Origin: Guillardia theta CCMP2712
Lineage: Eukaryota; Protista; Cryptophyta
DNA length: 37,009 nucleotides
Direction of reading: 5' to 3'
NCBI RefSeq assembly: GCF_000315625.1
Contig: NW_005434572.1
Location: 40,631 to 77,639, forward strand
The position numbers and the translations under genes are program-made. Of this stretch, positions 4,215 through 21,548 are shown one piece after another (within the stretch, counting starts at the first letter, position 1; each line of letters starts with the position of its first letter). The notes under the pieces are model-generated. The model was not told the origin of the DNA and did not search any database. It worked only from the letters and a program-made list of their open reading frames with translations.

Positions 4215-5306
4215 CTTCACTCCTCTCCTTCACTTCGCTTCACCTCTGTACATCTCTTCGCTTCTTCACTTCGATTCTAAGTTTTTCCTCGCCTCTTGTA
4301 CTTGCGATGCTTCTGTGAAGGTTCTAATAATCAATTTTCAATGCTCTACTTGTCTCTGCGACAGTTGTGAATGCTTCGATGCTGCCAGGCTCTCTTCCTC
4401 CTGTCGCCCAACTTTGACTTCACACGGTTCGGTTCCATCCGCTCGGTGACTCTGTGAGGGCGTAAAAAGTGTTTATACGACCAAAGGAAGAATACCCAAT
4501 CACCCCGGGCCGGGCTCAGTGACTCAGTGCACCCGGTCCCCCCCGGCGATCGGACGGTCATTTGCCAATCATGAATGATTGCTTGACTCACTGAGTGACC
4601 GTCTGAGTCCGGCGTACCCCCGGCGTCCGACGATCGTCGGGCTCGGAATACCCGGTGTTCGGTTGCAGCGGCGCCGCTGCGGCCGCTGACTGAGGCTGCT
4701 GAGTCCGATCCGATGGTCCGACGGCCGCCCGGAAGTTTCTCAGTCACACGGAACTTGGGAATTCAGAGTCACGTCGGAAGGCCCGGGCCCGGGCCGCCAG
4801 TTTGACGGTCAATTCCCTAGTAGTGGGCTGGCACGGCGGCGGCGGGGCCCAGGCACCTCGGGCCAGCGCCCCCGGCGTACTGCGCGCCGGCCGCCCCCCC
4901 GGGCGCCCGTGACTGCCATCCGTGCCAGCGGCGTGACCGGCGGACTGAGCCGCGGCGGCAAGGGGGGCCCGCCGGCCTCCCCTGTGACATTACGTATGAC
5001 ATTACGTTCCCTCCGTGTGACTCCCGCGCCCGGGCCGCGCGCGGCCCGCCGCCCCCGGGGGGCCGGCGGCGGGGGTCAGTGACCACGGTATCGGACGACC
5101 GTGCGCGTGGCCGGTACTACCGCCCCCGTGACTGAGCGGACTGGGACTCGGAGTCCGAAGGCTCACTGGGCAGGCTCGCAGTGGCAGGTGAGGTTCCGAG
5201 CCACAAAGCCGCGGCGGCCCGCCGGCCCCCCCGCCCCCCGTGCCAGTAAGTTACTCGTGAGTATCCGGGACAGTATCCGATAATTATCCGGAACGGTATC
5301 CGCGCC

Positions 5307-5318
5307 ACCGCACGTGCA
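5307..5318. promoter_or_regulatory. ACCGCACGTGCA (E-box/G-box core CACGTG) 3 nt upstream of NOC2 ATG
   Basis: Exact 12-mer shared with the SAS10 upstream region; function inferred. Confidence 0.55.
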
Positions 5319-5321
5319 GCC

Positions 5322-8300
5322 ATGGGGAAAGTGTCGAAGGCAACGAAGAGGTTCAGCCAGAAGCGGCTGAGCGATGAGCTCAAGGCGAGGAAGATGAGGA
5401 AGAAGATCAACTACAGAGAGAAGAAGAAGTGGGGCGCGAGAAAGTCTCCTCAAGAGCTGGAGGCTGAAAGGAAGGGAAAGAGCGAGGAGGAGGAGGAGGA
5501 GGAGGAGGAGGAGGAGAGCCAGGAGGTGTCGAAGGAAAAGGTCCAAAGCAAGAAAGGAGACGATTATGATAAAGACGTTGAAGACTTCCTCGAGAAAGGA
5601 TTTTTTGAGGCTCTTGAGGAGGAAGAGCCATCTGAGGCAGAGAGCGATGGCGAGGAGGGCGAAGGGGAGGACGAGGACGAGGGCGAAGGGGAGGACGACG
5701 ATCTCTCAGACACAGATGCGATCTCGAAGCACAAGCAGGACCTTGAGAGACTGAAAGTGGAGCAGCCAGAATTCTACAAGTACCTCCAGGAGAACGATAA
5801 GGACTTGCTCAACTTTGACGACTCAGAGGACGAGGGGGGGGATGAAGGTCAGCAGGCTGAGGCCGGCAAGGAGGAGGGAGAGGACGAGGACGACGGGGTC
5901 CAGATCCTCACATTGCAGACTTTGGACAGGTGGAACAGGTCGCTGCTGGGAGGAGAATCTTTCAAGGGGCTCCGCGATCTGATCAGAGCGTTTGAAAGCG
6001 CATGCAACGTGGAGGATGTGGTCGATACCAAGGGTAAGGATGCGGAGGCTGTCGAACGGGCCAAGAACAAGTTCAAGTTTCGAATCGTCAGCGCACAAGT
6101 CTTCGAGCGGCTGATGCGCATGTGCCTGACGAAGATGCACATTTACTTGAGCCTCTACCTGAAGCTGAAGCCCTCGGAGGAAGGAGGAGCAGCCAAGAAA
6201 GCGAATCCTCAGTCAAGTGACAGATGGAAGCGAATTTCCCTCCCCATCAAAGCGTGAGAGACACTTGCAGGTCAAGTCCCAGCGGGTGTCTGACCACTCG
6301 TGGCAGGTACGTCAAGAGCATGGTAAACTTCCTCGAGACGCTGACGGACCCAACTATGACGCATCTGCTCCTCCGACATGCTGAGAGGCTGCTGGCCTAC
6401 ATCCGGTGCTCCTGCTTCTTTCTTCTCTTGTCCAGCTGACCTCCAGCTTGTGAAGCCCTTTCCCCAAGATCGCCAGGAAGCTGCTGAAGCTTTCCCTCCA
6501 AGTCTTCGGGAGCGTCGAGAGCAACCGCGTTCAGGCATTCTTCCTGGTCCGCCGGCTGGCAGTGGAGATGCCCTACCCCTTCATCGACGGCTGCTACAAG
6601 GGGCTCTACCTCACCTACGTGCGACACTGCAAGTTCACCAACCTCAACGTCATCGAGGGGCAGGTAACGAGCGACCTGGAGGGGATGGGGGAAGGGGGAA
6701 AGCTGAAGGGAGATGTGAGCGTAGGACACGAAAGTGCAAGGGGAGAGAGGAGCTGAGAGGAGCTGAGAGGAGCTGAGAGGAGCTGAGAGGAGCTGAGAGG
6801 AGCTGAGAGGAGCTGAGAGGAGCTGAGAGGAAGGGAGCAGGAGACGGAGAGGAACATGGCAGGCGGGTTCTGACTTGTTGCCAAGGCTTTCATGGCTCAA
6901 TGTGTCGTTGAACTCTTCGGGCTGGACAAGAACATTGCCTACGAGCATTCCTTTGTCTACATCCGCCAGATGGCCATCCAGCTCCGCTCAGCTATCACAA
7001 CCTCTGCCTCCAAGAGTGCCGGTTCCCTTCCCATCCTTTCCTGCGTCTCTTGTGCTCCTGCTCCTGCTCCTGCTCCTTCTCATGCTACTGCCACTGCTTT
7101 CGCTGCCGCTCTAGCTGCTGCTGCCGTTGCTCTCCCTCACCTCTCGCTCTTCGCCTCTGCTTCCTCTTCCTGCTGTAAGGCAAGTCATGAGGCCTGACCG
7201 GAGCTCGCAGACGCTCACAAGGTGATCTCGAGCTGGCAGTACCTCAACTCCCTCAAGCTCTGGGGGAGGATGCTCTCTTCCTACCCCGGCAAGGACGCGC
7301 TGGGCCCCCTCGTCTATCCCCTGGTTCAGATCGCCCTCGGTGTCCTCACCTACCTCAACGCCCCGAAGCATCTCCCGCTCCGCCTGCAGGTCTGCCAGGT
7401 TCTCGTGCGGGTCCAGCGGCACTGCGAGGTTTACATCCCCCTCTCTCCCCACATCCTCGACATCTTCACCAAGCGCGACCTTCACAACACCTCCGTCAAG
7501 GCTGGCTCGCACCCCCACGACTTCCAGGTCGGCATCAAAGTCAGCAAGACGGTCCTGTCCACCCGCCTCTACCAGGAGGCCGCCTTCGAGGAGACGCTCA
7601 AGACTCTGGTGCTGGTCGAGGAGTCGGAGGAAGAGGCTTCCTTACCCCTTCCTGTCAGGTCCTCTTCTACGGCTCCTGCTGCTACAGCCCGTCCTTCCCC
7701 GAGCTCGTCGTTCCCTGCATCATGCAGCTCAGGTTGTTCGCCAAGGCAACGCAGGTCTCGAGGTTTCGCCGTCAGGTCAGCTCCTTCCCTCCTCCCCTCC
7801 TTGTCGCTTCCTCTGTCTCTCCCCTCCTCCCTGCTTTCCCTGTCTCCCTCCTCACTCTCTCGCTTCTCAGGTCAAGGACGTGATCGAGCGTTTCGAGCGC
7901 AACGCCTCCTTCATCGCGAGGTTGAGAAACTCGTCGAGCATCTCGCCCCAGGAAGTTCTTCCTATTAATGCTCTCCAATCCGCCGACCCTCAAGGACAGG
8001 TCGTTCCTCTTCCCCTTCTCCCCCTCCTCCTCCTACCCTTCTTCTCCCTCCCCTCCTCCTCCTCCTCCTCCTCCTCCTCCTTCCCCCCCTTCTTCTCCCT
8101 CCCCTTCTCACTCTCGTTTGCCTACATTGCATCCTCTCCTCTCTTCTTCCCTCCTCTCTCTCATGTCCTGACTCTCCGCCAGGCCCCGCTTCGCTCAGCG
8201 TGGCTGCAGTCGGCGACAATCGGGGGAGACTTGAAGACGCTGATGGAGAAGAGAAACGCCAAGGTGAACCCGCTAAAGGAGGGAGAAGGCCTGACGACTG

Positions 8301-8605
8301 AGCAGGTGGAGGCCAAGGAGGAGGAGGACGATGATGATGATGAGGAGGAGGCGACTGGAGCTGAAGAGGACGGCAAGACAGCGAAAGAGCCGAGATGGAA
8401 GGAGGCGAGGAGAGAAAAGAGGAAGCGAGAGAGGCAGGAGAGGGCGGCAAAGAAGAAGGGAGAGGAGGAGAGCACGAAGAAAGAAACGGCAACGAAGAAG
8501 AAGACCAAGAAGAGCAAAGTAGGAGGAGTCGCCGCATCCCATCCCGTAGCGGACGACAAGGAGGACGAGGTGTTCGACTTGCAGCTCTCCGAGGACGAGG
8601 ATTGA
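5322..8605 (+). CDS. NOC2: Nucleolar complex protein 2 homolog (60S biogenesis); spliced
   Basis: MGKVSKATKRF start, HKQDLERLKVEQPEFYKYLQENDKDLLNF, FMAQCVVELFG..AYEHSFVYIRQMAIQLRSA, WQYLNSLKLW, LVYPLVQI, PLRLQ, YSPSFPEL are Noc2 family motifs; seven GT-AG introns restore the frame (e.g. 6664-6885, 8000-8182); basic/acidic C-tail. Confidence 0.95.
6745..6830 (+). repeat. 10-bp minisatellite (AGCTGAGAGG)x8 inside a NOC2 intron
   Basis: Eight perfect units 6751-6830 plus a partial unit. Confidence 0.97.
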
Positions 8606-8633
8606 ATGTATGTAACGCTAGACAACAACACCC

Positions 8634-10889
8634 TCACCACACCTTGCGCTGAGTTATCGCCTGCATGCAGATCTCAGCCCCTCCCTCCTCCTTTTTTCCT
8701 CCCCCCTCCCCCAGCACTTTCTTCCTCCCCCTCCCCCAGCACACCTTCAGCATGGTCTTGGACTGCTTTTCCTTGAGCTTGATATCCTTCACCTGCATGC
8801 CCGTCATCATGCGTGCTGAGGGGGGAGGATGGCGGACAGGAGGAGGAGGAGGAGGAGAAAAGTTGGAGATGGTTGAGATTTACCTTCTGCCATTGCTCTT
8901 GCAGCTCCTTCTTCTCGAACTCCATCCTCCTCTCTGCAGCTTCCTTCCCTTCTTCCCACGCCTGTTCCCTCGTCAGACGCAGCTGTCACGATACGCTTGC
9001 CGCACCTTCTCCAGCAGCTTCATGAGTTCTTCTCCCCCTACCATCCTCTGATCTCCGACCCCTCCTAGCTTGCCGCCCCTCCCTGCCCCGCTCCTCTTCG
9101 CTACTTGCTCCCCCTCCTGCGCTATCGAGCTGAAGCCGCTCGCCATGCCAACTGGACTCTTCCCTCTGGGGAGATCCGGCGAGTCCTGAAGCCTGAGGTC
9201 AGGACAAGAGGAGGAGGAGGAAGACAGACAGGTTGGGCGGGGGATGCGTCTCTCCGCGAGCTTCGCTGCCTCTCCTTCTCCATCGCTTGCTCGAGTTCCT
9301 TCTGCTGTTGGGTCACGAGGCACAGGAGGAGGAAGCACTTGACCTTTTCGTCCTCTAGCATCTTCACCCTCCTCCGCAGTCGCTCCGCCTGCTCCTTGTG
9401 CTCACTCTCGCTTGCTCGAACGGCCTCCAGCTCCTCGGACATGATGTGCAGCTCCAGTCTTGAGCTCTACAGGAAGAGTTGTAAGAGCAAGACGCAAAGA
9501 AGATGGATGGATGGACGGACGGACGGATGGATGGATGGATGGATGGATGGATGGAGGGAGGGAGGGAGGGAGGGAGGGGTTGGAGGAAGAAGAGTTCGAA
9601 CCTCAAGGTCGTGCACTAGCTGCCCCTCCGCCTCCTTTGAGTACTGAACCTGCAAACTGAATCATCCAAACTTCCTCTCCCCCCTCCCCCCGTGTTGCCC
9701 TCCCTACTCTCTTCTTCTCGCCCTCCCTTTCCTCCTCTCTCCCCATCTCTCTCCCCCTTCCCCGCCCTCTTCCCTTCCTGTTGGCTCCTCTACCTGTAGT
9801 CTGCACTCGGCGATGGTTCTGTCGGACATCTGCTGTAGGAGCTCGTTCCGTCGAACCTGCTCAAGCAGCTAGTCGCGTGTTTGTCAGATGCAGTCAGAGG
9901 GGAGAGAAGCATTTACCTCCTCCTCCAGCCTGCGGCACTTGTTTTCATCCCCAGCTGCCGTTGACTCCAACATATGGAGCGAGGGAGAGGCAGAGGAAGA
10001 TGCAGAGCGAGAGCGGAAGGCAGAGTCACAGGCTAGTAAACAAGAATCCAACGAGTCCATCAACTGCTGAGCCGAGAGGACGAAAGTCCCGACATGCTCT
10101 GAGATCCTCTGCAGTTCCTGTTCAGGATGATCACGGCGAGAGGATCTTGCATCCTTCAGCTGCCTCTTCCTAGCTTCATCCTCAGCCTCCTCGTCTCCTT
10201 CCCATCCCTTTGACTTCGCCGAATCTCCTTCCCATCCCTTTGACTTCCTCGAGGACCGTTCGGTCCTCGAGGAACTTCGCTTCAGCCAGTCGGGAGGAGG
10301 AAGACTTCTGAGCGCGTTGAGAAGCACAAGAAGGGAGCTGGAGGAGATGTTGGCTGCCTCCTCCCCTGACCCTCCTGCTCCTCCATCATCGTCCACGGGA
10401 GCAGGAGGAGAGGAGAGGGTCAGCGACTGAGCACAGCTTCTTCCCTCCAGCTCATCCCTAGCGTTCAGCGTGACCTCGGAGATCTTTCTGTACCATTCCA
10501 GCAGCTCCGCATTCCTTCCGCTTCCATCCCCCGCCACCTCTCCCCCTCCCTCCCTCCCGCAAGACTCTAGTTCAGATGACTCCACAAGTACTTCCCGATC
10601 GCTCGACACTTCAGGGACCTCCTCTCCCTCCGCACCATCCTCGGGCCCGCACTCACTGTCTCTCTGCCCCTGTGTCACTGCCAGAGCCCCTGCTCCTGCT
10701 GGCGGAGCGCTGGCAACCACGGTCCTCAACGACTCGAGCTCCTGCTGGACAGACTTGGCTCTCAAGAGCTGCGCTCGTATCATGCTGCTGCCGTTGAGGA
10801 GCTGCTGAGTGAGGTCCTTGAGTAGCTTCTCCAGATCCTCCTTCCTCAGCTTCTCATGGCCAGACGTCGCTGCTGAGTCAGCAGTGGAT

Positions 10890-10924
<35 letters not shown>

Positions 10925-13240
10925 GCATGAATCCTCCATGGCACCGTCTTTCAGCGCCTGAAGGAGCTTCTTCTGCAGGCTGAAGGCTTCCATGGCGGTG
11001 GAGTACAAGTCTTGGAGATCCCTGGCCTCCAGTCTGACGCTCGAAGGATCCACAGTATCGCTGTTGTCGGATGAAAGCGTCCCATCCTGATCCTGCCAGC
11101 ATCCGTCAGCCAAGAGGAGCACCAACGGCTCCTCTCACCCCTACATTCACCAGCTCAGCCCTCACGGAGAGGTCAGGGGGTGGTGAGATCATCTCCCTCA
11201 TTCCCCGGTCTACCTTGGGGGAGCTCAGCCTATCGCTGCTCGATCCTTCACGACGAGCAGGAGGCTCCCGTTTGACTCGCATCCTAGCGCTGGCGACCTC
11301 TTGACCTCCAGCTTTCTCCGACAGCTCACATTCGATCGGCACAGCACGTGGGACGACCTTGGTGCCGTTCTTGGACTTCCCCTTGGCTCCATTCATCTGG
11401 TGTCGACAACCATCACGTCAGGCATTCAAACATCACTCGTCCTCTCGGTCAGAGTCACCTTGGAGTCTGCCGTTGCTGCTCGACTCTGAGCAGGTTGGGC
11501 GTCCAGAGCATTCGGCCAAGATTCGGACTGCTTCTCAGAGGATTTCTTCTTGCCGGCGTTTCCCCGGGGGGGATTCTTCCGGCCGGCCTGATCACCACGA
11601 GCAGCAGCAACTTCAGGGACCACCGAGCTCTTCACAAGGGACACGATGTTGTCAACCGCTGCTACCATCATGTCCATCTTCTCATGACTTGTTGCTGAGA
11701 GACCATTCTCATTCGAACTTTCTTTGGTCATGGTCACGACCGGCTCCTCCTGCCTCTGCTGGTCGTTTGGGCTGTCCTGCCACAGCCTGTCGGTGCTGAC
11801 ACCTGCTGGGGGGGTGTAGACGGTCCAACGAGCTGCTTTTCCAGCTTCGGTTTCCCCTGCGTTCTCCTTTGCCGGTGGACCTTCAGCTGGAACAGGCGTA
11901 GGTTGAGAGTCGAGCTTCACGATCTCGTCTTTCACCCTGCACGTACTGTTGAGATTCGCAGCAGGTCTCAGAGCATCTGTGCATGTCTCTTCCCTCGCAT
12001 CCACTTGGACACTGTCCTTGGCTGGCTCTGCTCCTTCTCCTGGCCCAGTCTCCACGTCCACGCTGAGCGAGCTCTCTTCGTACGGCACTTCCTTGGCATC
12101 TCGTGGATCGTTCATGGACACGGCCCGAAGTGCATTGAAAGGCAGACTCCCAGCGATTGATCGATCCAACTTATCAGCCACCAACTCCTTGCCAGGGAGA
12201 ATGTCTGCAACTTTCATCACTATATTGTATCCCGTGACTTTCCCTTGCGAATTCCGCAGTATGGCCAAACTAAGTTCACTTGCACCTTCCATCTCCCGCA
12301 GGAAAGAAGGAATCGTGCGCTTAGCCACGGGTGCTCCATTCATCTTCACGACTGTGCTTCCAAGCACGATTCCAAGCCGGTCAGCTACAGTACCGGGCTC
12401 GACATACGTGATGGACCAATCTCTGTTGTCGATACACAGCCCAAACCCCGAGAGCAGAGCATTATCTTTCATCATCTCCACATAGAACTGCTCACGAAGA
12501 TGAGGATCCTGACAGTGCCAAGAGAGACTAAGGCCGTATGCTTCCCAAGTTGTACCCAGCCATCCCGATATACCTCTCTCGAGCTCCAAGTAGCACGGGT
12601 TTGTCACCAGCGCCCTTTCCACAGAATGTTGCCACAGAGACTCAAAGAACTCCTTCCATAGCATCCGTCGACCGTCAGTGCTCCATGACTTCACGGGACC
12701 AGGGGGGTCAACATCTACTCAGAACAGTCAGAACAATGCAGAGTCATCAGGTCAAAGAGGACTCACCCAACCAGTTAGCTGGAGCTTTGAAGATGGTGTA
12801 GTTGAACGCGATCACCCGATCGCCTTCTCGCGGGTAGTACCAGCCTGAGGATTCTGTTCCAGCTTTGCTCACAATCTTATGCGGTCGGATGTACATGTCT
12901 CCTCTCTCATGGCCTTTCTTTCCGGAAATCTCATCTCCGAGATTCGGATTTGCCGAGACGAGGAGAAAGCCTGACTGGATGTCGAACGACGCGTTCAAGC
13001 CTAGCTTGTTCTCACCCATGATATTTCAGATGTTACTGGTTCCAGACGGTCTTGGTTGGCTATTCTCCTCCAGCTACGGTTGCCTCATCTGTGCTAAGTC
13101 GTGCGCGTCAAGGGATATGATCAAGTTGACAAGAGCACTCTTGATTGAGAGGAGACAACAAACGCTCCCACCCATCATCATTTGTTTGAAACGTGTTTCT
13201 TCCTGATATCTATGTTTTGCTCTCTCAATATTCTTGCAGC
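8634..13240 (-). CDS. Hypothetical PDZ-domain protein with low-complexity middle and coiled-coil C-terminus; multi-exon, both ends uncertain
   Basis: ORFs 12747-13019, 11426-12694, 11106-11396, 9884-11125, 9467-9655 and 9122-9442 are linkable by GT-AG introns. PDZ-like [42 protein letters not shown] at ~12255-12452; poly-Q; E/K/Q/L-rich heptad segments. Confidence 0.7.
9504..9578 (+). repeat. Compound (GGAT)/(GGAC)/(GGGA) microsatellite, intronic
   Basis: Directly visible. Confidence 0.9.
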
Positions 13241-13621
13241 CTAAACACGCCCCACTCCCCACTCCCCCCCCCCATTAATATCCTATCAATATAACTTGGT
13301 TATCCTACTTGTTGATCACTAGCTGCGTCTTCCCTCACACCTCTATCTCTCTCGCTGTCTCTCTCGCTGTCTCTCTCTCTCGCTCTCGCTCTCTGCCTGC
13401 ATGTTCGTCCGTTCGTTTCTCCCCCTCCCTCCCTCCTCCCCTCCCCGCACTGCTCCCTGCATGACAAGAGAAAATAGAGTGTCGACAGTTACAGCGACAC
13501 TGGCTGTCGGTTACAACTCCCCAAGTTTGTAACTGATCTCTAGTGACCACCGGGCCCGGCCCGGGGGACTCCGGGCCCGAACCCACACAGCCCGCCTCAT
13601 CGCCAACACCAAAGCGTCAGC

Positions 13622-16600
13622 ATGGCAGGCGGGCAACCGGTGGCGCGGCGGAGAGGAGGAGGAGGAGGAGGAGGAGGAGGAGGAGAGACGCGCATGCTCA
13701 CAAAGAGTGGGTATCTTCACAGAAGATCCTTCAAGGGACACAAGGTTGATGCTTCCTCACTCGTTCTGTGTGTCAATTGTTCTTGTTGTTGCTTGTGCTA
13801 GCGACCGATGTTCGTACCTGACACGCCTGGAAGTGCATGCTCGCACTGACGTTTGTTTTGACCTCAAGGATGTTGTGAACTGTTTTGTTGTCGTCAAGAA
13901 GAAACGGGATGACGAGCGCGAACGGTTGATCACGGCCTCGAGTGACGGTACGACCTGCCTTGGCAGTTCCCTCTGTCGTGCACCTGCCTCGTGCCCGATC
14001 CGTCTGATATGCAGAGCCTGCAGGACTGATCAAGGAGTGGGACCTGGAGACAGGGAGCTTCATCACAGACTTCCGAGCCGTAGAAGTGAAGGGGAAGGAG
14101 GGCACAGAGATGAAGAGCCATGAGCAAGGTGTTTGCTGCCTGACCGTCAGCCAGGGCTTCTTGTACAGCGGATCATTCGACACGACGATAGCAAAGTGGG
14201 ACATCAAGGAGAAGACGCTGGTGGCGACGTACAAGGGACATTCAGAAGCCGTTTACCGGCTGGCGGTGAGGGAGAACTGGTTGATCTCTGCATCACGAGA
14301 CAAGACGGTGCGGGTGTGGAGGGAGAAAGATTCTAAGTGCGTTGCTGTGCTCAAGGGGCACACGGGCCCCGTCCTCTCTCTCGCTGTGCAGGAGGACATC
14401 CTCTTCACGGGAGCCGACGACTGCACCATCAGGCAGTGGGACTGGCTGTCTGGCTCGCAGCTGCGAGAGTACATGGGGCACACTGACTGCGTGACGGACC
14501 TCAAGGTGCAGGGCGACTCTCTTTACAGCTCCTCCTTCGACTCGACCATCCGCGTGTGGGACACGCAGACGGGCCAGTGCGTGCGGGTGTGCAAGGCGAA
14601 CGCGGGGATGCGAGGGATCACGCTGACGGCAGGGAAGATCTTTGGGGCAGGCAACGACGCGCACCTGTACGTGTGGGATCAAAACAGCGCGCAGACAGAG
14701 CCTCTGACATCCGATCAGTTCGCTCGAGCCGGTCTTACCATGGTGATGGTGGAGGGACATGTCGTCATCGCTTCCAGCGGCGATCGCACGTGCAGAGTGT
14801 GGGAGAAGGTCTCAACAGCGACGGTTCAGGCAAATGGGCAGGAGGAACATAAGAGCCTGACGACGACATCTAAGAAGGAACGATTCTCGTTCCCGCCAGG
14901 AGCGACTTCGTTCCTTGGCGACCTGATGGAGGACATGGAGGTCGGTCACCGCCCAGCGCCGCACGAGTCCTCGGAGACTCCGGCGAGTCAGTCGCTAGTC
15001 AACGTTTACAACGGCCTGCACGACGACAAAGTGCATGGCGTGGTGGTGTCGGAGGGCCTGGTGTTCTCTGCCTCCTCAGACCGCACTATCGGCTGCACCC
15101 CTCTCAACCCTTCCTCGGACGCGAAGCAGATGCGATGGAGCGAGCACAAGGACCGCGTGCTTGCCGTCACTGTGGCAGGGGAAGGGGAGGTCGTGTTCTC
15201 GGCATCAGCAGACTGCAGCATCAAGAAGTGGGACGTAGCGACCGGCCGGTGCCTCGAAACGCTGAGTGGGCACTCGGACTGGGTCTCCTGCCTGCTCGTC
15301 AGCGAGGGATCCTTGTTCTCGGGCTCCTGGGACAGCTCCATTAGGAAATGGGACGTGGCGACCTGCCGCTTCATCGCCGAGCTGAACGCCCACAACGTGA
15401 GGATTCTCCTGCACCTCCTCCTCCCCTTTCTGCATTTTTACAGCTCCTGCCCCTGCCCCTGCTCCTTCTTCTTCCAGCTACTGCCCATTCTCCTGCTCCT
15501 GTCCCCTGGACATGACTTTCGGTGATGTAGGACCCGATCTACTGTCTTGCCGCTGGTGTCGGCGTCGTCTTCAGCGGCTCAAGGGACTGCACGATCCGAG
15601 CATGGCGGACGGACACAGGGGAGTGCATCTTCGTGTACGAGGGACATACTGCCGTCGTTGCCTCCTTGGTAGTGGCCGACCCCTACATTTACAGCGCGTC
15701 CTGGGACAAGACCATCAGGTGGGTGCTCTACCCGCCGTCGCATGCCTCCTACCTCGCAATCCTCCTCTGAGTCGCCTCTGAGAGCTGCGTTTTCGTTGCT
15801 GTCTCACTGTGCCCCCCCCCCCCGCCCCCCTCGTTCCCTCCTCCTCATCCCTCCACTCTTGTTTCTCTTCCCTCCTTCCTTCCTTCCTTCCTTCCTCCTC
15901 CTCCTCCTCCTCCTCCTCCTCCTCCTCCTCCTCCTCCTCCTCCTCCGGACGCCCTCTCATATCGAACATCCTGCGGTGCAGGCGATGGGACATCGCTACC
16001 GGCCGCTGCACGCTCTTCTGCCCCCAGCTCTCCCAGGTCCTCCTCCTTTCCACCTGATCGCCAACGAGCTGACGCCCAGCTGTCTCAGCCTGTCCTCTGC
16101 CTCGCCGAGCACCGTCAGTTGCTCTTCGCAGGGACCGGCGACGGAGTCATCCGCAGCTACCTGACGGATACAGGGGAGGAGCTGGAGCCAGCGTTCTCGT
16201 ACCACGAGACAGCCGTCAACTCGCTCTTCGTGTACGACGATCATCTCTTCTCCTGCTCCAACGACTCCACAGTAGCGCAGGTAGAACCCTCCCGCTGCCC
16301 TGACTCCACTCCCCTGCTCCCCTTCCATTCTCTCATTCTCCCTCCATTCCCCTCCTGCTCTGCAACCCCGCCCACCGTTGTCCTTCATCCCCCCCCCTCC
16401 TCCCTCTCCTTCTCTTCGTTGTCGACGTTGCTGAACTTTGCGATGCTGTGCCAGTGGAAGATCGAACACAGCGACCTGGACAGAGGAGCGAGGCAGGTGG
16501 ACGTCAGTGTCGCCTCCAAGAGCCTCATCGACAGAATCATCGGTTCTTCTTCCCTCGTGGTGACTGAAACCCCTCCTGCCCCATCCCCAGCCCCTCCTCC

Positions 16601-16876
16601 CCCCTCCTGCTCCTGCTCTTTCTGCTCCTGCTCTTTCTGCTCCTGCTCTTTCTGCTCCTGCTCTTTCTGCTCCTGCTCCTGCTCCTCCTCCNNNNNNNNN
16701 NNNNNNNNNNNNNNNNNNNNNNNNNNNNNNNNNNNNNNNNNNNNNNNNNNNNNNNNNNNNNNNNNNNNNNNNNNNNNNNNNNNNNNNNNNNGCGATCACA
16801 GTTCCTGACTCAGACCGAGATCGACGACCCAGTTCCTTCCATGGTGAAAGGATGGCTGTGGAAACAGGTCTTGCAG

Positions 16877-16936
<60 letters not shown>

Positions 16937-17578
16937 CGCTCCCGCTCCCGCTCCCGCTCCTGCTCCTGCTCCTGCTCCTGCTCCTCGTCATCCTCCTCCG
17001 CTCAGTTGTTGACGTTGGTGTGCAGGGCTCACTGTTCCGTCGATGGAGCAAGCGCTACTACACACTCACCAAAGGCATTCTGCTCTACCATGCCGACGAG
17101 GTCAGCTCCAACTCTTCTCCGCCGCTACCATCACCTCTTTCTCCTCCTCCTCCTCCCTCCTCCTCCTCCTCCTCCTCCTCCTCCTCCACCACCACCTCTT
17201 GCTTCCCCTGGTGCTGGCCGTGCTCCTCACCGTCACCCTCTTTCAGCACACGCAGAAGCCGCTGGACCATCTGGTGATGAGCGACGTCATCTCGGTGGCT
17301 GAGGGGGACAAGGACGTGAAGAAACCTTTCTCCTTCACCCTCGTCACCATCAACAGGGTCCACCACCTCGCTGCTCCTGATGAGGAGGTATAACTACCTC
17401 CTTCCCTTCCTTCCCTCCCCGCCATCCCTCCACTTTCTCTTTCCTCTCGCTTCGTTGCAGAGGACGTGACAGGGTCGGGCAGGAGTTGCAGAAGTGGATC
17501 AGTGCGTTCACGACGTACATCGAGAACAACAACTTGCAGAAGAAGCTTGCTCAGAAGAGAGCAGCGAGGAGTTACTGA
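13622..17578 (+). CDS. WD40-repeat protein (about 14 repeats, probable double beta-propeller) with C-terminal PH domain; spliced, spans an assembly gap
   Basis: Repeated GH...WD units (GHTGPVLSL..IRQWD; GHTDCV..IRVWD; GHSDWV..IRKWD; GHTAVV..IRRWD). Spliced PH: MVKGWLWKQGSLFRRWSKRYYTLTKGILLY...KPFSFTLVTINRVHHLAA...ELQKWISAF. Start agcATGG 13622, stop TGA 17576-17578. Confidence 0.88.
16692..16791. other. Assembly gap (100 N)
   Basis: N run beside a simple repeat; true size unknown. Confidence 0.99.
16878..16985 (+). repeat. (CTCCTG/CTCCCG)n hexamer repeat in an intron splitting the PH domain
   Basis: Directly visible. Confidence 0.9.
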
Positions 17579-17769
17579 GGCGAGCAGAAGCCTGTGCTGT
17601 AGGACGAGAGAAGGAGAGGAGGAGAGAAGAAGAGGAGGAGAGTGAATGTGGAAGGCAAGTGAAGGAAGATGGAAGAGGAGAGGATGGGAAAGAACGAGCA
17701 TAGAGGAGGGAAGGGCCGATACTGGGTGGATATGAAGGGTTGTTATGATTACAAGCAGGCAAGTGAAGG

Positions 17770-19886
17770 CTACAACTTGCGGCTGCGGCTGATGTTTGAC
17801 TTGATGCCGGTCGTCTCCCCCCCGTATGCTGCCCTGTCGCTCCTCTCCTGCTCCGCATGTCAGCGACGTCAGAGCGTGACCGAGCAGGAGCACCTGCTTC
17901 CCGTAGAAGGACGTGCGCTCCTTCGTCTTGGACTTCTCGAACTTTCTTCGGTGCTTGACCCTGTCGATCAAACATTCTCAGCTCAGTTCCACCACATTCC
18001 CGGCTGTTACCTGGGGTTCTTCTTGAGCTTCGAGCGATGTGGGACGAGCCCGCGGTTGGCAGTGATGACTCGGCCTGCCTGTCGCTTCGAACCGACTTCA
18101 ACCTTCTCCTCCTCACGGTACGTGGCCTGGACGGCGGGTCAGGGGACAACAATAGGGTGAAGCAGCTCGGTACCTCCTTGACGACCTTCCGCGTCTTCTC
18201 CTCCTTGGACTTTTCCTTGGAGGCCTTGACGGCCATGTAATAATCGTCGTCGTCGGAATCGTTGCTGCCCTTCTGCCGCTTCGTGTCGTCGTCTGTGCGC
18301 TGCGATGACAACTTGAGCTTCCTGTTTTCCACCTGTTGGATGATCTTCCTGCGGTCCTTCACTGGGACATCCCTCTCCCCGGACTCGGCTTGCCCTGACT
18401 TCTTTGCCTTCCTCGCCTGCTCCCGAGTGTCCAAGTACTCGCTCAGAGCTCTCTTCTTGAGCACCTGCACTGCCCGCTGGTCCGCGGACGTGTCAATCGT
18501 CTCGTCGACATCTCCAACATCATCAAATGATTCCATTCGTCCTGTGTTGCTCCTCTTCTCCTTCCTCCCATCTTGATGGCTCTTACTGGCCTTCACCAGT
18601 TTCTCTCTTCCCGTCAATCTTGCTGTTGATGAAGAGGCGTTGTCAAACTCGTTTTCATCCTGAAACTCCTCGCGCTCTGCACCATCCTGAGAGATCCTCG
18701 CATTCTTCCCCTGCTTCTTGTCGCTCTTCTTTGACTTCTTCTTGCTCTTTGGAGCTCTCTCCTCCTCGTCTTCCTCGTCCATCATAAGGTCCTCGTCGTT
18801 GTCCTCATCTTCTTCCCCTTCATCCTCCTCCTCCTCCTCCTCCTCCTCCTCCTCCTCTGCATCCGACATGGCGAGGAGGAGGTCCATCTCCTCACTCAGT
18901 TTTGCATCCAGCGGCTTCATTTTCTCTAGGAGCGACCGGAACTCAACAAGCTTGTCGATTACAGGATGGTTCTTGACCGGGGAGCCCTCGGACTTGAGGA
19001 GGAGGTAGAAGGATACACAATTGCAGTACCCTAGCAGCACCCGGAGTCTGGAGTCAACGTAGGTGAAGCCTGGCGAGTTCTTCGCTCCTTGAGCCACCAG
19101 CTTCAACTTGACGGGGATCAGCTTGTTCTGCATCTCCTGCATGAACTTCTTGAAGTCTGAGATCAGCCCCAACAGCTCAGGTGCATCGTTCTCAAGCAAC
19201 TCCCTCTTCTCCTTCTCTGAAAGATCCGCCAGATCTCGCTCGATCTTCTCAACAGTGATGCCATCGAGGGCTTGCATTTCCTTGTTGAATTGATCGAGTA
19301 ATGTTCCATCATATCCAAGATTCTTTCCTGCTTTCTTCTTGCTTTCTTTCTTCTTTCCTGCCTTCTTGGTTGTTAGCTTTTCATCAGCCATAGCTCCCAA
19401 GGTATCGTCTTCATCGCTCGACACAACTTCCTCGTCCCCAAAGTCATCCTGCTGTAGTGCCGTGCTTCGTTTTGCTCGGATTTTCTCAGCTTCTTTCTCT
19501 TCTGCCTCCTCCTCCTCCGAATCCTCCACCATGTCGGCATCGTAATACTCACTCTTTTTCTTACCCCACCATGTCTGCTCATCGTCCTTCCTGTCTTCAT
19601 CTTCATCACTGAAGACATCTCGTGTAGCAACATGGTTCCCCTCGTCGTCATCGTCGTCGTCATCATCTTCTTCGTCATCCAGCCCGATAACATCGACGTC
19701 CTCCTCTCCGTCATCGTCGTCGTTCTCGTCATCGACGAGCTTAATCTTGTTCCTACCTTCCATGAACTGGTCGACCTCATCGTTCATCATTTCATCGTCC
19801 ATCTCAGCGTCGTCAGCACTTCTTCCTCTCCTCCCCCCCCCTCTGCCTCCTCGACCTCCTCGACCTCCTCTTGCCCCCCGCGCCAT
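17770..19886 (-). CDS. SAS10: Sas10/Utp3 SSU processome component; long first exon plus three short 3' introns
   Basis: WGKKKSEYYDAD, NDAPELLGLI, LLGYCNCVSFYLLLKSEG..HPVIDKLVEFR (Sas10/Utp3/C1D domain); spliced C-terminus ITANRGLVPHRSKLKKNPRVKHRRKFEK...YGGETTGIKSNISRSRKL* is the Sas10 C-terminal domain. Start accATGG at 19886. Confidence 0.95.
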
Positions 19887-19889
19887 GGT

Positions 19890-19901
19890 ACCGCACGTGC
19901 A
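19890..19901. promoter_or_regulatory. ACCGCACGTGCA (E-box/G-box core CACGTG) 3 nt upstream of SAS10 ATG
   Basis: Exact 12-mer shared with the NOC2 upstream region; function inferred. Confidence 0.55.
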
Positions 19902-20010: not shown

Positions 20011-20643
20011 CTCTTTACTCAAAGTTAAGTTAAAAATCAGTACGAGGACAATCAGGAGAGTCGAGGAGGCTTGACCCTGCCACACTGTCGCACTGGCCGG
20101 GCCAAACGGCGAGACTCAGAAGAGCAAAGACTCTGACAGCGAGAAACAAACCTAATCCTGGCAACTGCTGTCCCCCAACTGGCAAACTTAACTGATCATT
20201 ACCTTCACTTGAGTCGGACCGGACACGCCGTAATCACTGACTCACTTAGTGAGGAATGAAACCGGGCAGGGCCACTTTATATTTTCACGTGACTCAAAGT
20301 TCAAGTAAGCCACGGTTTTAAAGATCAGACGAGGACAATCCTTCCAGGAGAGTCGAGGAGGCGTGACCCTGACACTGCCATTCTTTACTCAAAGTTAAGT
20401 TAAAGATCAGTACGAGGACAATCAGGAGAGCCATTCATGCCATATGCATGCATCTTTTTTTTTCTCCTTGGGAAGCATGAGCTACCCTGGTTTTTTGCCG
20501 CCCATTACTGGGGGGTAGTGAGACAGGGATAAAGTAGGGTGGGGTGATTGCGGCGTGACCGGAATGCTCCGGCGCTGTCCGATCAGCCAGTCACGCACTG
20601 TTACTGACCGAATGGTACTGATTTTAAGTCAACTTTGAGTAAA
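20011..20643. repeat. Local dispersed repeat (30-75 bp): three direct copies and one inverted partial copy
   Basis: tctttactcaaagttaagttaaa.atcagtacgaggacaatcaggagag at 20012-20060 and 20382-20430; diverged copy ~20292-20377; inverted gtactgattttaagtcaactttgagtaaa at 20615-20643. Confidence 0.9.
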
Positions 20644-20708: not shown

Positions 20709-21548
20709 ATGCCGGACCGACCCCCCGTTTCACCGGCCGAGTCAGTGGGACTACCACCCGTGGGTGGTGACTCCGGGTCCTGTACCGTTGCGAGAAACGA
20801 CGAAAGGAGCGGTTGCTATTTGCTGCTGGAGAACGAGCTTCATCACTCCATCTTCTTCATCCCACCAGAGCAGGAGGTCACTGATTGTCTCGTCACATCA
20901 GAAGGCGCGAGAGCACAAGGCCTCGAGCCTTCAGCATAGACAGCAAGGAAGTAATCCCGCAGGATGGAGCTTGGAGATGCCATTGATGCTATCTTCTCTC
21001 ATCGCGAATCGTCCACGACCGAGTCAGGCACAAGGAAACGCTGACGTCGACGCGCAGCCGCTACCACTGATGAGCAAGGAAAGGTTGATCTTGCGCTCAC
21101 AAGAGAGCTGGAGAATCGTTTGTCGCAGCAAAGAGACGTCCCTCCTCCCCCTGGCGGCCAAGAAAACTGTCAAGGAGAGAGCGACGGGGCGCAGCAGCCA
21201 ACAGCGAGGTACAAGCAGCTCGAGGACAAACAAGCGGTCGATGGTACGGAAATTTGTTCAGGTGCTGCTGGGGGTCGAGCAGAATCGCGTCTGGACCCAG
21301 ATGCAAGTGAAAGTGAAGGCCAGCTGTTGAGAAGGTCGTGGTCAGCTGAGGAGCATGAGCGATTTCTCAGAGGCCTCGAGAAATTCTGTCCGCCAGCCTC
21401 TAGAGCTTCTGATGCAACCGACGGGCGTGTAAACGTCGGGCTGGGAAAAGGCGTCGCCTTCCTCATCTCGCGCGAGGTCGGTACTCGAACGCCCTCGCAG
21501 GTGCGATCGCATGCACAGAAATATTTCCGTAAGCAGATGCAGCCGTGA
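20709..21548 (+). CDS. Myb-related SHAQKYF-class transcription factor; 5' end uncertain (20709 or ~20977)
   Basis: RRSWSAEEHERFLRGLEKF...ISREVGTRTPSQVRSHAQKYF; intron 21209-21261 links the 20764 frame to the Myb frame. Confidence 0.88.

Follow-up and report, generated by a model that had tools for sequence, protein, structure and literature searches.

A candidate conserved E-box word beside the start codons of NOC2 and SAS10/UTP3 in Guillardia theta and cryptophyte-like lineages

The window analyzed here is the whole stretch of 37,009 nucleotides taken from contig NW_005434572.1 of the cryptophyte alga Guillardia theta CCMP2712. It carries two ribosome-biogenesis genes, NOC2 and SAS10/UTP3, and a 12-nt word containing the E-box hexamer CACGTG lies directly before the start codon of each. 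The gene names had been assigned in a first-pass annotation made from the letters of the sequence, and matches to the Noc2 and Sas10/Utp3 domains upheld them. The NOC2 reading frame from 5322 opens with MGKVSKATKRF, an N-terminus that presumably resembles that of yeast Noc2, and the Noc2 domain matches at 6892–7968. For SAS10, the match to relatives extends to about 17773 and includes the C-terminal Sas10 domain. The first exon of NOC2 is 80% (BLASTP) to 85% (alignment) identical to that of Hanusia phi; compared with a marine metagenome protein, its identity is 92% (BLASTP) and 96% (alignment). The lineage, described earlier only as apparently algal, is accepted as that of a Guillardia-type cryptophyte alga, in keeping with the 80–85% identity to Hanusia phi. 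The features that matter for the E-box word are the following.

5322–7968, plus strand: 5' part of NOC2; exon 1 spans 5322–6254/6255, and the exons of the Noc2 domain reach at least to 7968
17773–19886, minus strand: SAS10/UTP3, matching the Sas10/Utp3 domain as well as the Sas10 domain of the C-terminus
5307–5318, no strand: E-box 12-mer ACCGCACGTGCA, hexamer at 5311–5316, inverted with respect to NOC2, with gcc and then the ATG (5322) directly after it
19890–19901, no strand: E-box 12-mer, sense-strand form TGCACGTGCGGT, followed by acc and the minus-strand ATG of SAS10/UTP3 (A at 19886)
14783–14794, plus strand: 11/12 copy ATCGCACGTGCA in the coding sequence of a WD-repeat protein, judged a chance match

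Scanning the window for the 12-mer yielded exactly two perfect copies of ACCGCACGTGCA, at 5307–5318 and 19890–19901, so that the earlier description of an identical 12-mer followed by gcc-ATG at NOC2 and acc-ATG at SAS10 was accurate. With one mismatch allowed, three matches were found versus 0.12 expected, and none of 100 shuffled sequences gave three. The third match is the copy that had been placed inside a WD40 coding sequence at about 14785; it was located at 14783–14794 and agrees in 11 of 12 positions. Since ATCGCACGTGCA codes for D-R-T-C-R-V-W within a generic WD-repeat protein, it was treated as a chance coding match. The WD40 gene was considered as a ribosome-biogenesis factor and rejected, its product being generic and FBXW7/WDR5-like despite a borderline Pfam match to WDR3. 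The palindromic 8-mer GCACGTGC occurred three times in the window, at the same three positions. Could a GC-rich palindrome have come to lie near two start codons by accident? In the shuffled sequences, GCACGTGC reached three copies in 1 of 100 cases, and the plain hexamer CACGTG was found eight times in the window versus 6.2 expected, i.e., without over-representation. These two counts speak for such an accident; the relatives decided against it.

The relatives were contigs with exon 1 of NOC2 or of SAS10, on which the DNA upstream of the conserved start codon was read. The readable sample comprised the window and 25 fetched loci, covering two gene families. Since the word had been set beforehand by the first-pass annotation, the relatives served as an independent test. 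The promoter sites, with the start of the hexamer counted from the ATG, were as follows.

NOC2, window: ACCGCACGTGCA, inverted, −11
NOC2, L002: word and spacing identical to the window, −11
NOC2, L004–L008: TTCACGTGCGCC, −46
NOC2, L009/L010: TTCACGTGCGCC, −28
NOC2, L011: TTCACGTGCGCC, −69
NOC2, L013 and L014/L015: ATCGCACGTGCAA, −15, inverted like the window's word
NOC2, L022: TTGCACGTGCGCT, −88
NOC2, L025: no CACGTG in the available 170 bp; one-mismatch word GCAAGTGCAG
SAS10, window: TGCACGTGCGGT, sense, −13
SAS10, L001: TTCACGTGCGCA, −14, and again at −194, within a 35-bp segment that is duplicated
SAS10, L023: TTCACGTGTG, −18

The conservation in related species that had been proposed as a check was found: CACGTG(C/T)G was present 11–88 nt before the ATG in five of six NOC2 clades and in all three SAS10 lineages. 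The six NOC2 clades share 50–85% protein identity with one another. Over the 120 bp upstream, they are 48–58% identical between clades, versus a mean of 54.5% for shuffled sequence. In 83.4 kb of non-redundant sequence, CACGTG(C/T)G occurred 18 times. Eleven of these words lie within 100 bp before the ATGs of NOC2 or SAS10 (11 of 12 promoters), one is the copy at −194 in L001, and six are elsewhere, which corresponds to a background of about 0.007 per 100 bp (six words in about 81 kb). From these word counts, a binomial P of about 1e-14 was calculated by our own arithmetic for positives in seven of the eight replication promoters. An unbiased word count over ten promoters ranked CACGTGCG as the first 8-mer, present in eight of ten promoters as compared with a maximum of 2–3 in shuffled sequences. 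The recurrence of the word at the same genes, in five of six NOC2 clades and three of three SAS10 lineages and amid flanks that cannot be aligned, makes a chance origin wildly improbable; chance is excluded by the cross-lineage test. We are highly confident that the E-box word is a real, conserved cis-element.

Several further observations were made at the relatives. In L025 (1–170), GCAAGTGCAG is one base off the Guillardia word and lies about 75 nt upstream of the ATG, where it may represent a variant of the site or one that has decayed. The L001 segment of about 35 bp that carries TTCACGTGCGCA is duplicated at 540–570 and 720–750, 180 bp apart. A GCTTCGAA word beside the E-box is common to L011 (NOC2) and L001. 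In the freshwater clade (L004 180–962, L005–L008, and upstream of L009/L016), NOC2 shares an intergenic region of about 100–140 bp with a divergent partner, a gene of 260 aa without Pfam match. Since this region is so short, the E-box sits there in a very short two-way promoter. The prokaryote-style gene calls of P0058, P0059 and P0061 begin upstream of the true NOC2 ATG and encode there F-T-C-G, L-H-V-R and Q-H-V-L, the peptides expected of TTCACGTGCGG, CACGTGCG and GCACGTGC. These peptides hint at three further positive lineages, which were left out of the counts.

Comparison of the promoter sites defined the conserved unit as about 10 nt with the consensus T-(T/G)-CACGTG-(C/T)-G (T-K-CACGTG-Y-G). 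The 3' flank YG was found at 11 of 11 promoter sites, combined with the 5' flank T-(T/G). The flanks conform to (T/G)CACGTGC(G) at all sites except L023 (TCACGTGTG). Read as half-sites, one is GCAC followed by G at all promoter sites but L023 (ACAC), and the other is TCAC or GCAC. The fuller form TGCACGTGCGGT is present at both Guillardia sites. At SAS10, the word is directed towards the gene in three of three lineages. The NOC2 clades are divided, four having the word directed towards the gene and two away from it; it is inverted in the window and in L013/L014 and direct elsewhere. Thus, the site was found in both orientations at NOC2, at distances of 11–88 nt and within flanks of random-level identity, as is characteristic of an orientation-independent double-stranded site. 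The orientation flips and the variable distances fit a double-stranded site for a dimer; a strand-specific initiator, a signal of translation context and an RNA motif are all at odds with them. The earlier view that the opposite orientation of the two Guillardia copies reflects a double-stranded site bound by a dimer is therefore supported by flips across lineages. The emphasis on 12 identical nt and an equal 3-nt spacing fared differently. It is literally true in the window, and it is partly a coincidence, since what is conserved among the lineages is a unit of about 10 nt, found 11–88 nt from the ATG and in varying orientation. Within the window, the end of the hexamer is 5 nt from the ATG at NOC2 and 7 nt at SAS10; the 3-nt spacing appears equal because it is measured from opposite ends of the 12-mer, an asymmetric word whose orientation differs between NOC2 and SAS10.

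The window also allowed a comparison with other genes. The starts of genes for a PH-channel protein, a PDZ protein, a WD40 protein, a SHAQKYF-type Myb protein, a giant coiled-coil protein, a Pol delta subunit-like protein and a primase served for comparison. No CACGTG was present within 300 bp upstream of these at least seven other starts, in agreement with the earlier statement that the word had not been seen at other predicted starts. Conversely, five further CACGTG hexamers occur in the window, and no identifiable gene start follows any of them within 300 bp. The E-box was thus present at two of two ribosome-biogenesis starts versus none of at least seven others, with a Fisher P of about 0.03 for 0/7 (own arithmetic). 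For specificity towards ribosome-biogenesis genes, this difference is suggestive only. It bears on the alternative that the word is a general core-promoter or start-proximal word of a broad class of cryptophyte genes, e.g., growth or housekeeping genes, with NOC2 and SAS10 being merely two of its users. A sample of two families is compatible with that alternative, and so is a site that abuts the mature 5' end of NOC2. Against it, at least seven other starts in the window lack CACGTG within 300 bp (Fisher P of about 0.03), and the background in about 81 kb amounts to only six CACGTGYG words. A general start-proximal word is considered unlikely, though a good deal less so than a chance origin.

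RNA evidence was available for the 5' end of NOC2 (region 4700–6300). Contigs assembled from two runs, each belonging to a separate study, are spliced at 6255, which identifies them as RNA. They start at 5319 (run X1) and 5325 (X2), and none extends upstream; one raw RNA read spans roughly 5313–5363. These contig starts indicate that the mature 5' leader of NOC2 is very short and that the E-box directly adjoins the 5' end. For a relative of SAS10 (L024, 1–60), a Logan contig that looks like a transcript starts only 7 nt before the ATG, which fits very short 5' leaders in the group. The closeness of the E-box to the ATG is explained by such short leaders rather than by a link to translation. 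The last bases of the NOC2 word form a further feature:

5316–5318, plus strand: candidate trans-splice acceptor CAG, the last three bases of the NOC2 12-mer; the X1 contig starts at 5319

The CAG that closes the 12-mer and a contig start on the following base make trans-splicing at 5318/5319 plausible, and CAG at 5316–5318 may be a spliced-leader acceptor. In G. theta, transcripts of at least one fifth of the genes have a 17-nt spliced leader joined to them at a YAG acceptor (Roy 2017, PMC5619915). The distance from leader to ATG is most often 0–1 nt, and in 37% of cases it does not exceed 10 nt (PMC5619915). The YAG just before the NOC2 ATG, with an RNA contig beginning directly after it, resembles such cryptomonad acceptors (PMC5619915). 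It differs from them in that acceptors are described as following a polypyrimidine tract, not an E-box, and in that the motif occurs here in both orientations and, at SAS10, without a downstream AG. The leader CTCGGCGGCTGGTCAAG was looked for on the NOC2 RNA contigs, and no leader letters were found; the spliced-leader sequence was likewise absent from the window.

These data also bear on the possibility that the word acts at the RNA level, either as an outron or acceptor region for trans-splicing or as a 5' leader element controlling translation. The CAG at the end of the NOC2 12-mer, with the RNA contig beginning at 5319, would agree with it, as would the commonness of leader addition 0–10 nt before the ATG in G. 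theta (PMC5619915) and the AG found 0–1 nt before the ATG in L023, L004 and L009 as well. However, the asymmetric flanks switch strand between lineages, so that the RNA would differ, and the distance to the ATG varies from 11 to 88 nt. Trans-splicing of NOC2 at 5318 would itself remove the motif from the mature mRNA. In addition, no AG lies between motif and ATG at SAS10 in the window, in L001 or in L013; the absence at SAS10 implies that the motif as such is no acceptor feature. An RNA-level signal is therefore regarded as very improbable, less so than chance alone and far more so than a general promoter word.

Upstream of NOC2, two features adjoin the E-box, and both were compared with L002, the relative with 92–96% identity.

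5246–5306, plus strand: conserved block adjoining the E-box upstream, with four (G/T)TATCCG words and a sharp upstream boundary
4500–5240, no strand: promoter island before NOC2, rich in CpG and in GC, read from the sequence, without alignment to L002

About 73 of the 75 bp before the ATG are identical between the window and L002, and beyond that the sequences cannot be aligned. Within the aligned block of about 75 bp lie the E-box and the four (G/T)TATCCG words; the island farther up, rich in CpG, is unaligned. The (G/T)TATCCG words contain the GGATA core, which is a known target of SHAQKYF-type Myb proteins. Among the 8-mers common to both Guillardia promoters, only generic GC words were found besides the E-box. 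An Rfam search around both E-box sites gave no credible RNA families.

On the other side of SAS10, a Myb-related gene (20964–21540) is divergent from SAS10 and carries the SHAQKYF signature R-S-H-A-Q-K-Y-F near 21500. The intergenic region between the two genes (20012–20430) contains 49-nt direct repeats at 20012 and 20382 (98% identical), 31-nt repeat copies at 20053 and 20345 (94%), and another E-box with other flanks, TTCACGTGAC, at 20286. One break in the assembly lies in the window:

16692–16791, no strand: assembly gap within CTCCTG microsatellite sequence, in neither of the two genes and distant from all motif copies

CTCCTG-type microsatellite sequence is present on either side of the gap (16560–16920) and is probably the reason why the assembly broke there. 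The gap lies about 1 kb past the 3' end of SAS10 and 1.9 kb from the third copy of the word. Since it touches neither gene nor any motif copy, it has no bearing on the E-box finding.

The closest known system is found in Holozoa. Brown, Cole and Erives (2008, PMC2570694) described an E-box core-promoter signature at ribosome-biogenesis genes of flies, humans, a cnidarian and a choanoflagellate. In flies, the flanks read MAACACGTGYG, and clustered DRE (TATCGATA) words lie just upstream (PMC2570694). The signature was tied to Myc (Myc:Max), with 50–90% of about 100 ribosome-biogenesis genes carrying the E-box (PMC2570694). Neither the signature nor Myc/Max was found outside Holozoa, Myc having been sought in green alga, tree and ciliate genomes (PMC2570694). 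The cryptophyte word resembles this holozoan E(CG) in three respects. First, nucleolar ribosome-biogenesis genes, here NOC2 and SAS10, have CACGTG tightly linked to their 5' ends. Second, its 3' flank fits the fly CACGTGYG. Third, the TATC-containing (G/T)TATCCG cluster beside the Guillardia NOC2 E-box recalls the DRE cluster adjoining fly E-boxes. It differs in its 5' flank, which is T-(T/G) rather than (A/C)AA, so that the 5' AA of MAACACGTGYG is absent, as well as in its cryptophyte host and in being documented at two genes as compared with 50–90% of about 100. For the two genes, the cryptophyte element is classed as working like holozoan E(CG), not as belonging to that system.

Likenesses to fungal and plant systems are more partial. 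Fungal Cbf1 is a bHLH protein that binds (T)CACGTG at translation-machinery genes, and the TCAC half-site (TTCACGTG) is present in several of the relatives. Cbf1 sites are documented at ribosomal-protein genes, not at genes of the NOC2/SAS10 type, and the cryptophyte half-site GCAC followed by G, found at all sites but L023, is not the Cbf1 optimum. The fungal PAC/RRPE regulon likewise uses a dedicated word for a growth regulon, but the PAC and RRPE sequences are unrelated to the one described here. Part of the background to this fungal comparison (Cbf1 at ribosomal-protein genes, PAC/RRPE) is given in PMC2570694. The plant G-box, bound by bZIP (GBF/HY5) and bHLH (PIF/MYC) proteins, shares the hexamer and the setting of a photosynthetic organism, which makes light or diel control a plausible input. 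The plant-type G-box flanks CCACGTGG were found at none of the promoter sites. The motifs associated with ribosome-biogenesis and ribosomal-protein genes in plants are instead the telo-box and site II. In the library that was searched, neither a study of promoter or ribosome-biogenesis motifs in cryptophytes nor a paper on an algal ribosome-biogenesis E-box was found.

Taken together, the 12-mer seen in the window is best read, with reasonable though not strong confidence, as the local version of a promoter-proximal E-box that is conserved about 10–90 bp ahead of the start codons of NOC2 and SAS10/UTP3 in Guillardia and cryptophyte-like lineages. The element is probably a transcription-factor E-box. 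A dimeric CACGTG-binding factor would read the site as double-stranded DNA. The dimer would most likely bind at the edge of the promoter island, beside the mRNA start, and would set the transcription of these nucleolar genes. Such a factor would couple NOC2 and SAS10, and probably more ribosome-biogenesis genes, to growth or light. Whether the word is used throughout the ribosome-biogenesis genes is a more doubtful matter, with the chances put somewhat below even. About as doubtful is a Myc-free E-box regulon for ribosome biogenesis in cryptophytes, read by a non-Myc bHLH protein, perhaps of the expanded bHLH-PAS family. Under such a regulon, many nucleolar assembly genes would have T-K-CACGTG-Y-G at their 5' ends, and ribosome production would be tied to light, clock or nutrients.

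Several points weigh against the reading as a conserved E-box with a role in ribosome biogenesis. Two families, NOC2 and SAS10, are too small a sample to establish specificity for ribosome-biogenesis genes, and with only these two sampled the use across a regulon is inferred. One NOC2 lineage, L025, is the sole one without CACGTG, with 170 bp covered. The relatives are metagenome contigs whose taxonomy was deduced from similarity alone. The RNA ends consist of assembled contigs and one raw read reaching to about 5313, which is insufficient to fix the transcription start. Finally, the reader of the site is a prediction, a pair of group-B bHLH or bHLH-PAS proteins being the most likely and a bZIP protein less so; no bHLH gene was found within the window.

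How the about 200 ribosome-assembly genes are coordinated outside animals and yeasts is largely uncharted, and almost nothing is known about the promoters and transcription-factor sites of cryptophytes. A conserved 10-nt site at two genes offers a testable entry, by a genome-wide count of the word and as a probe for the bHLH/bZIP repertoire. The site could also help to tell host ribosome-biogenesis genes from nucleomorph-directed paralogs. Use of the word across the regulon, if true, would challenge the co-evolution of E-box and Myc in the animal–choanoflagellate ancestor. If the regulon is indeed Myc-free, the E(CG) signature would either have arisen twice by convergence or predate Holozoa.

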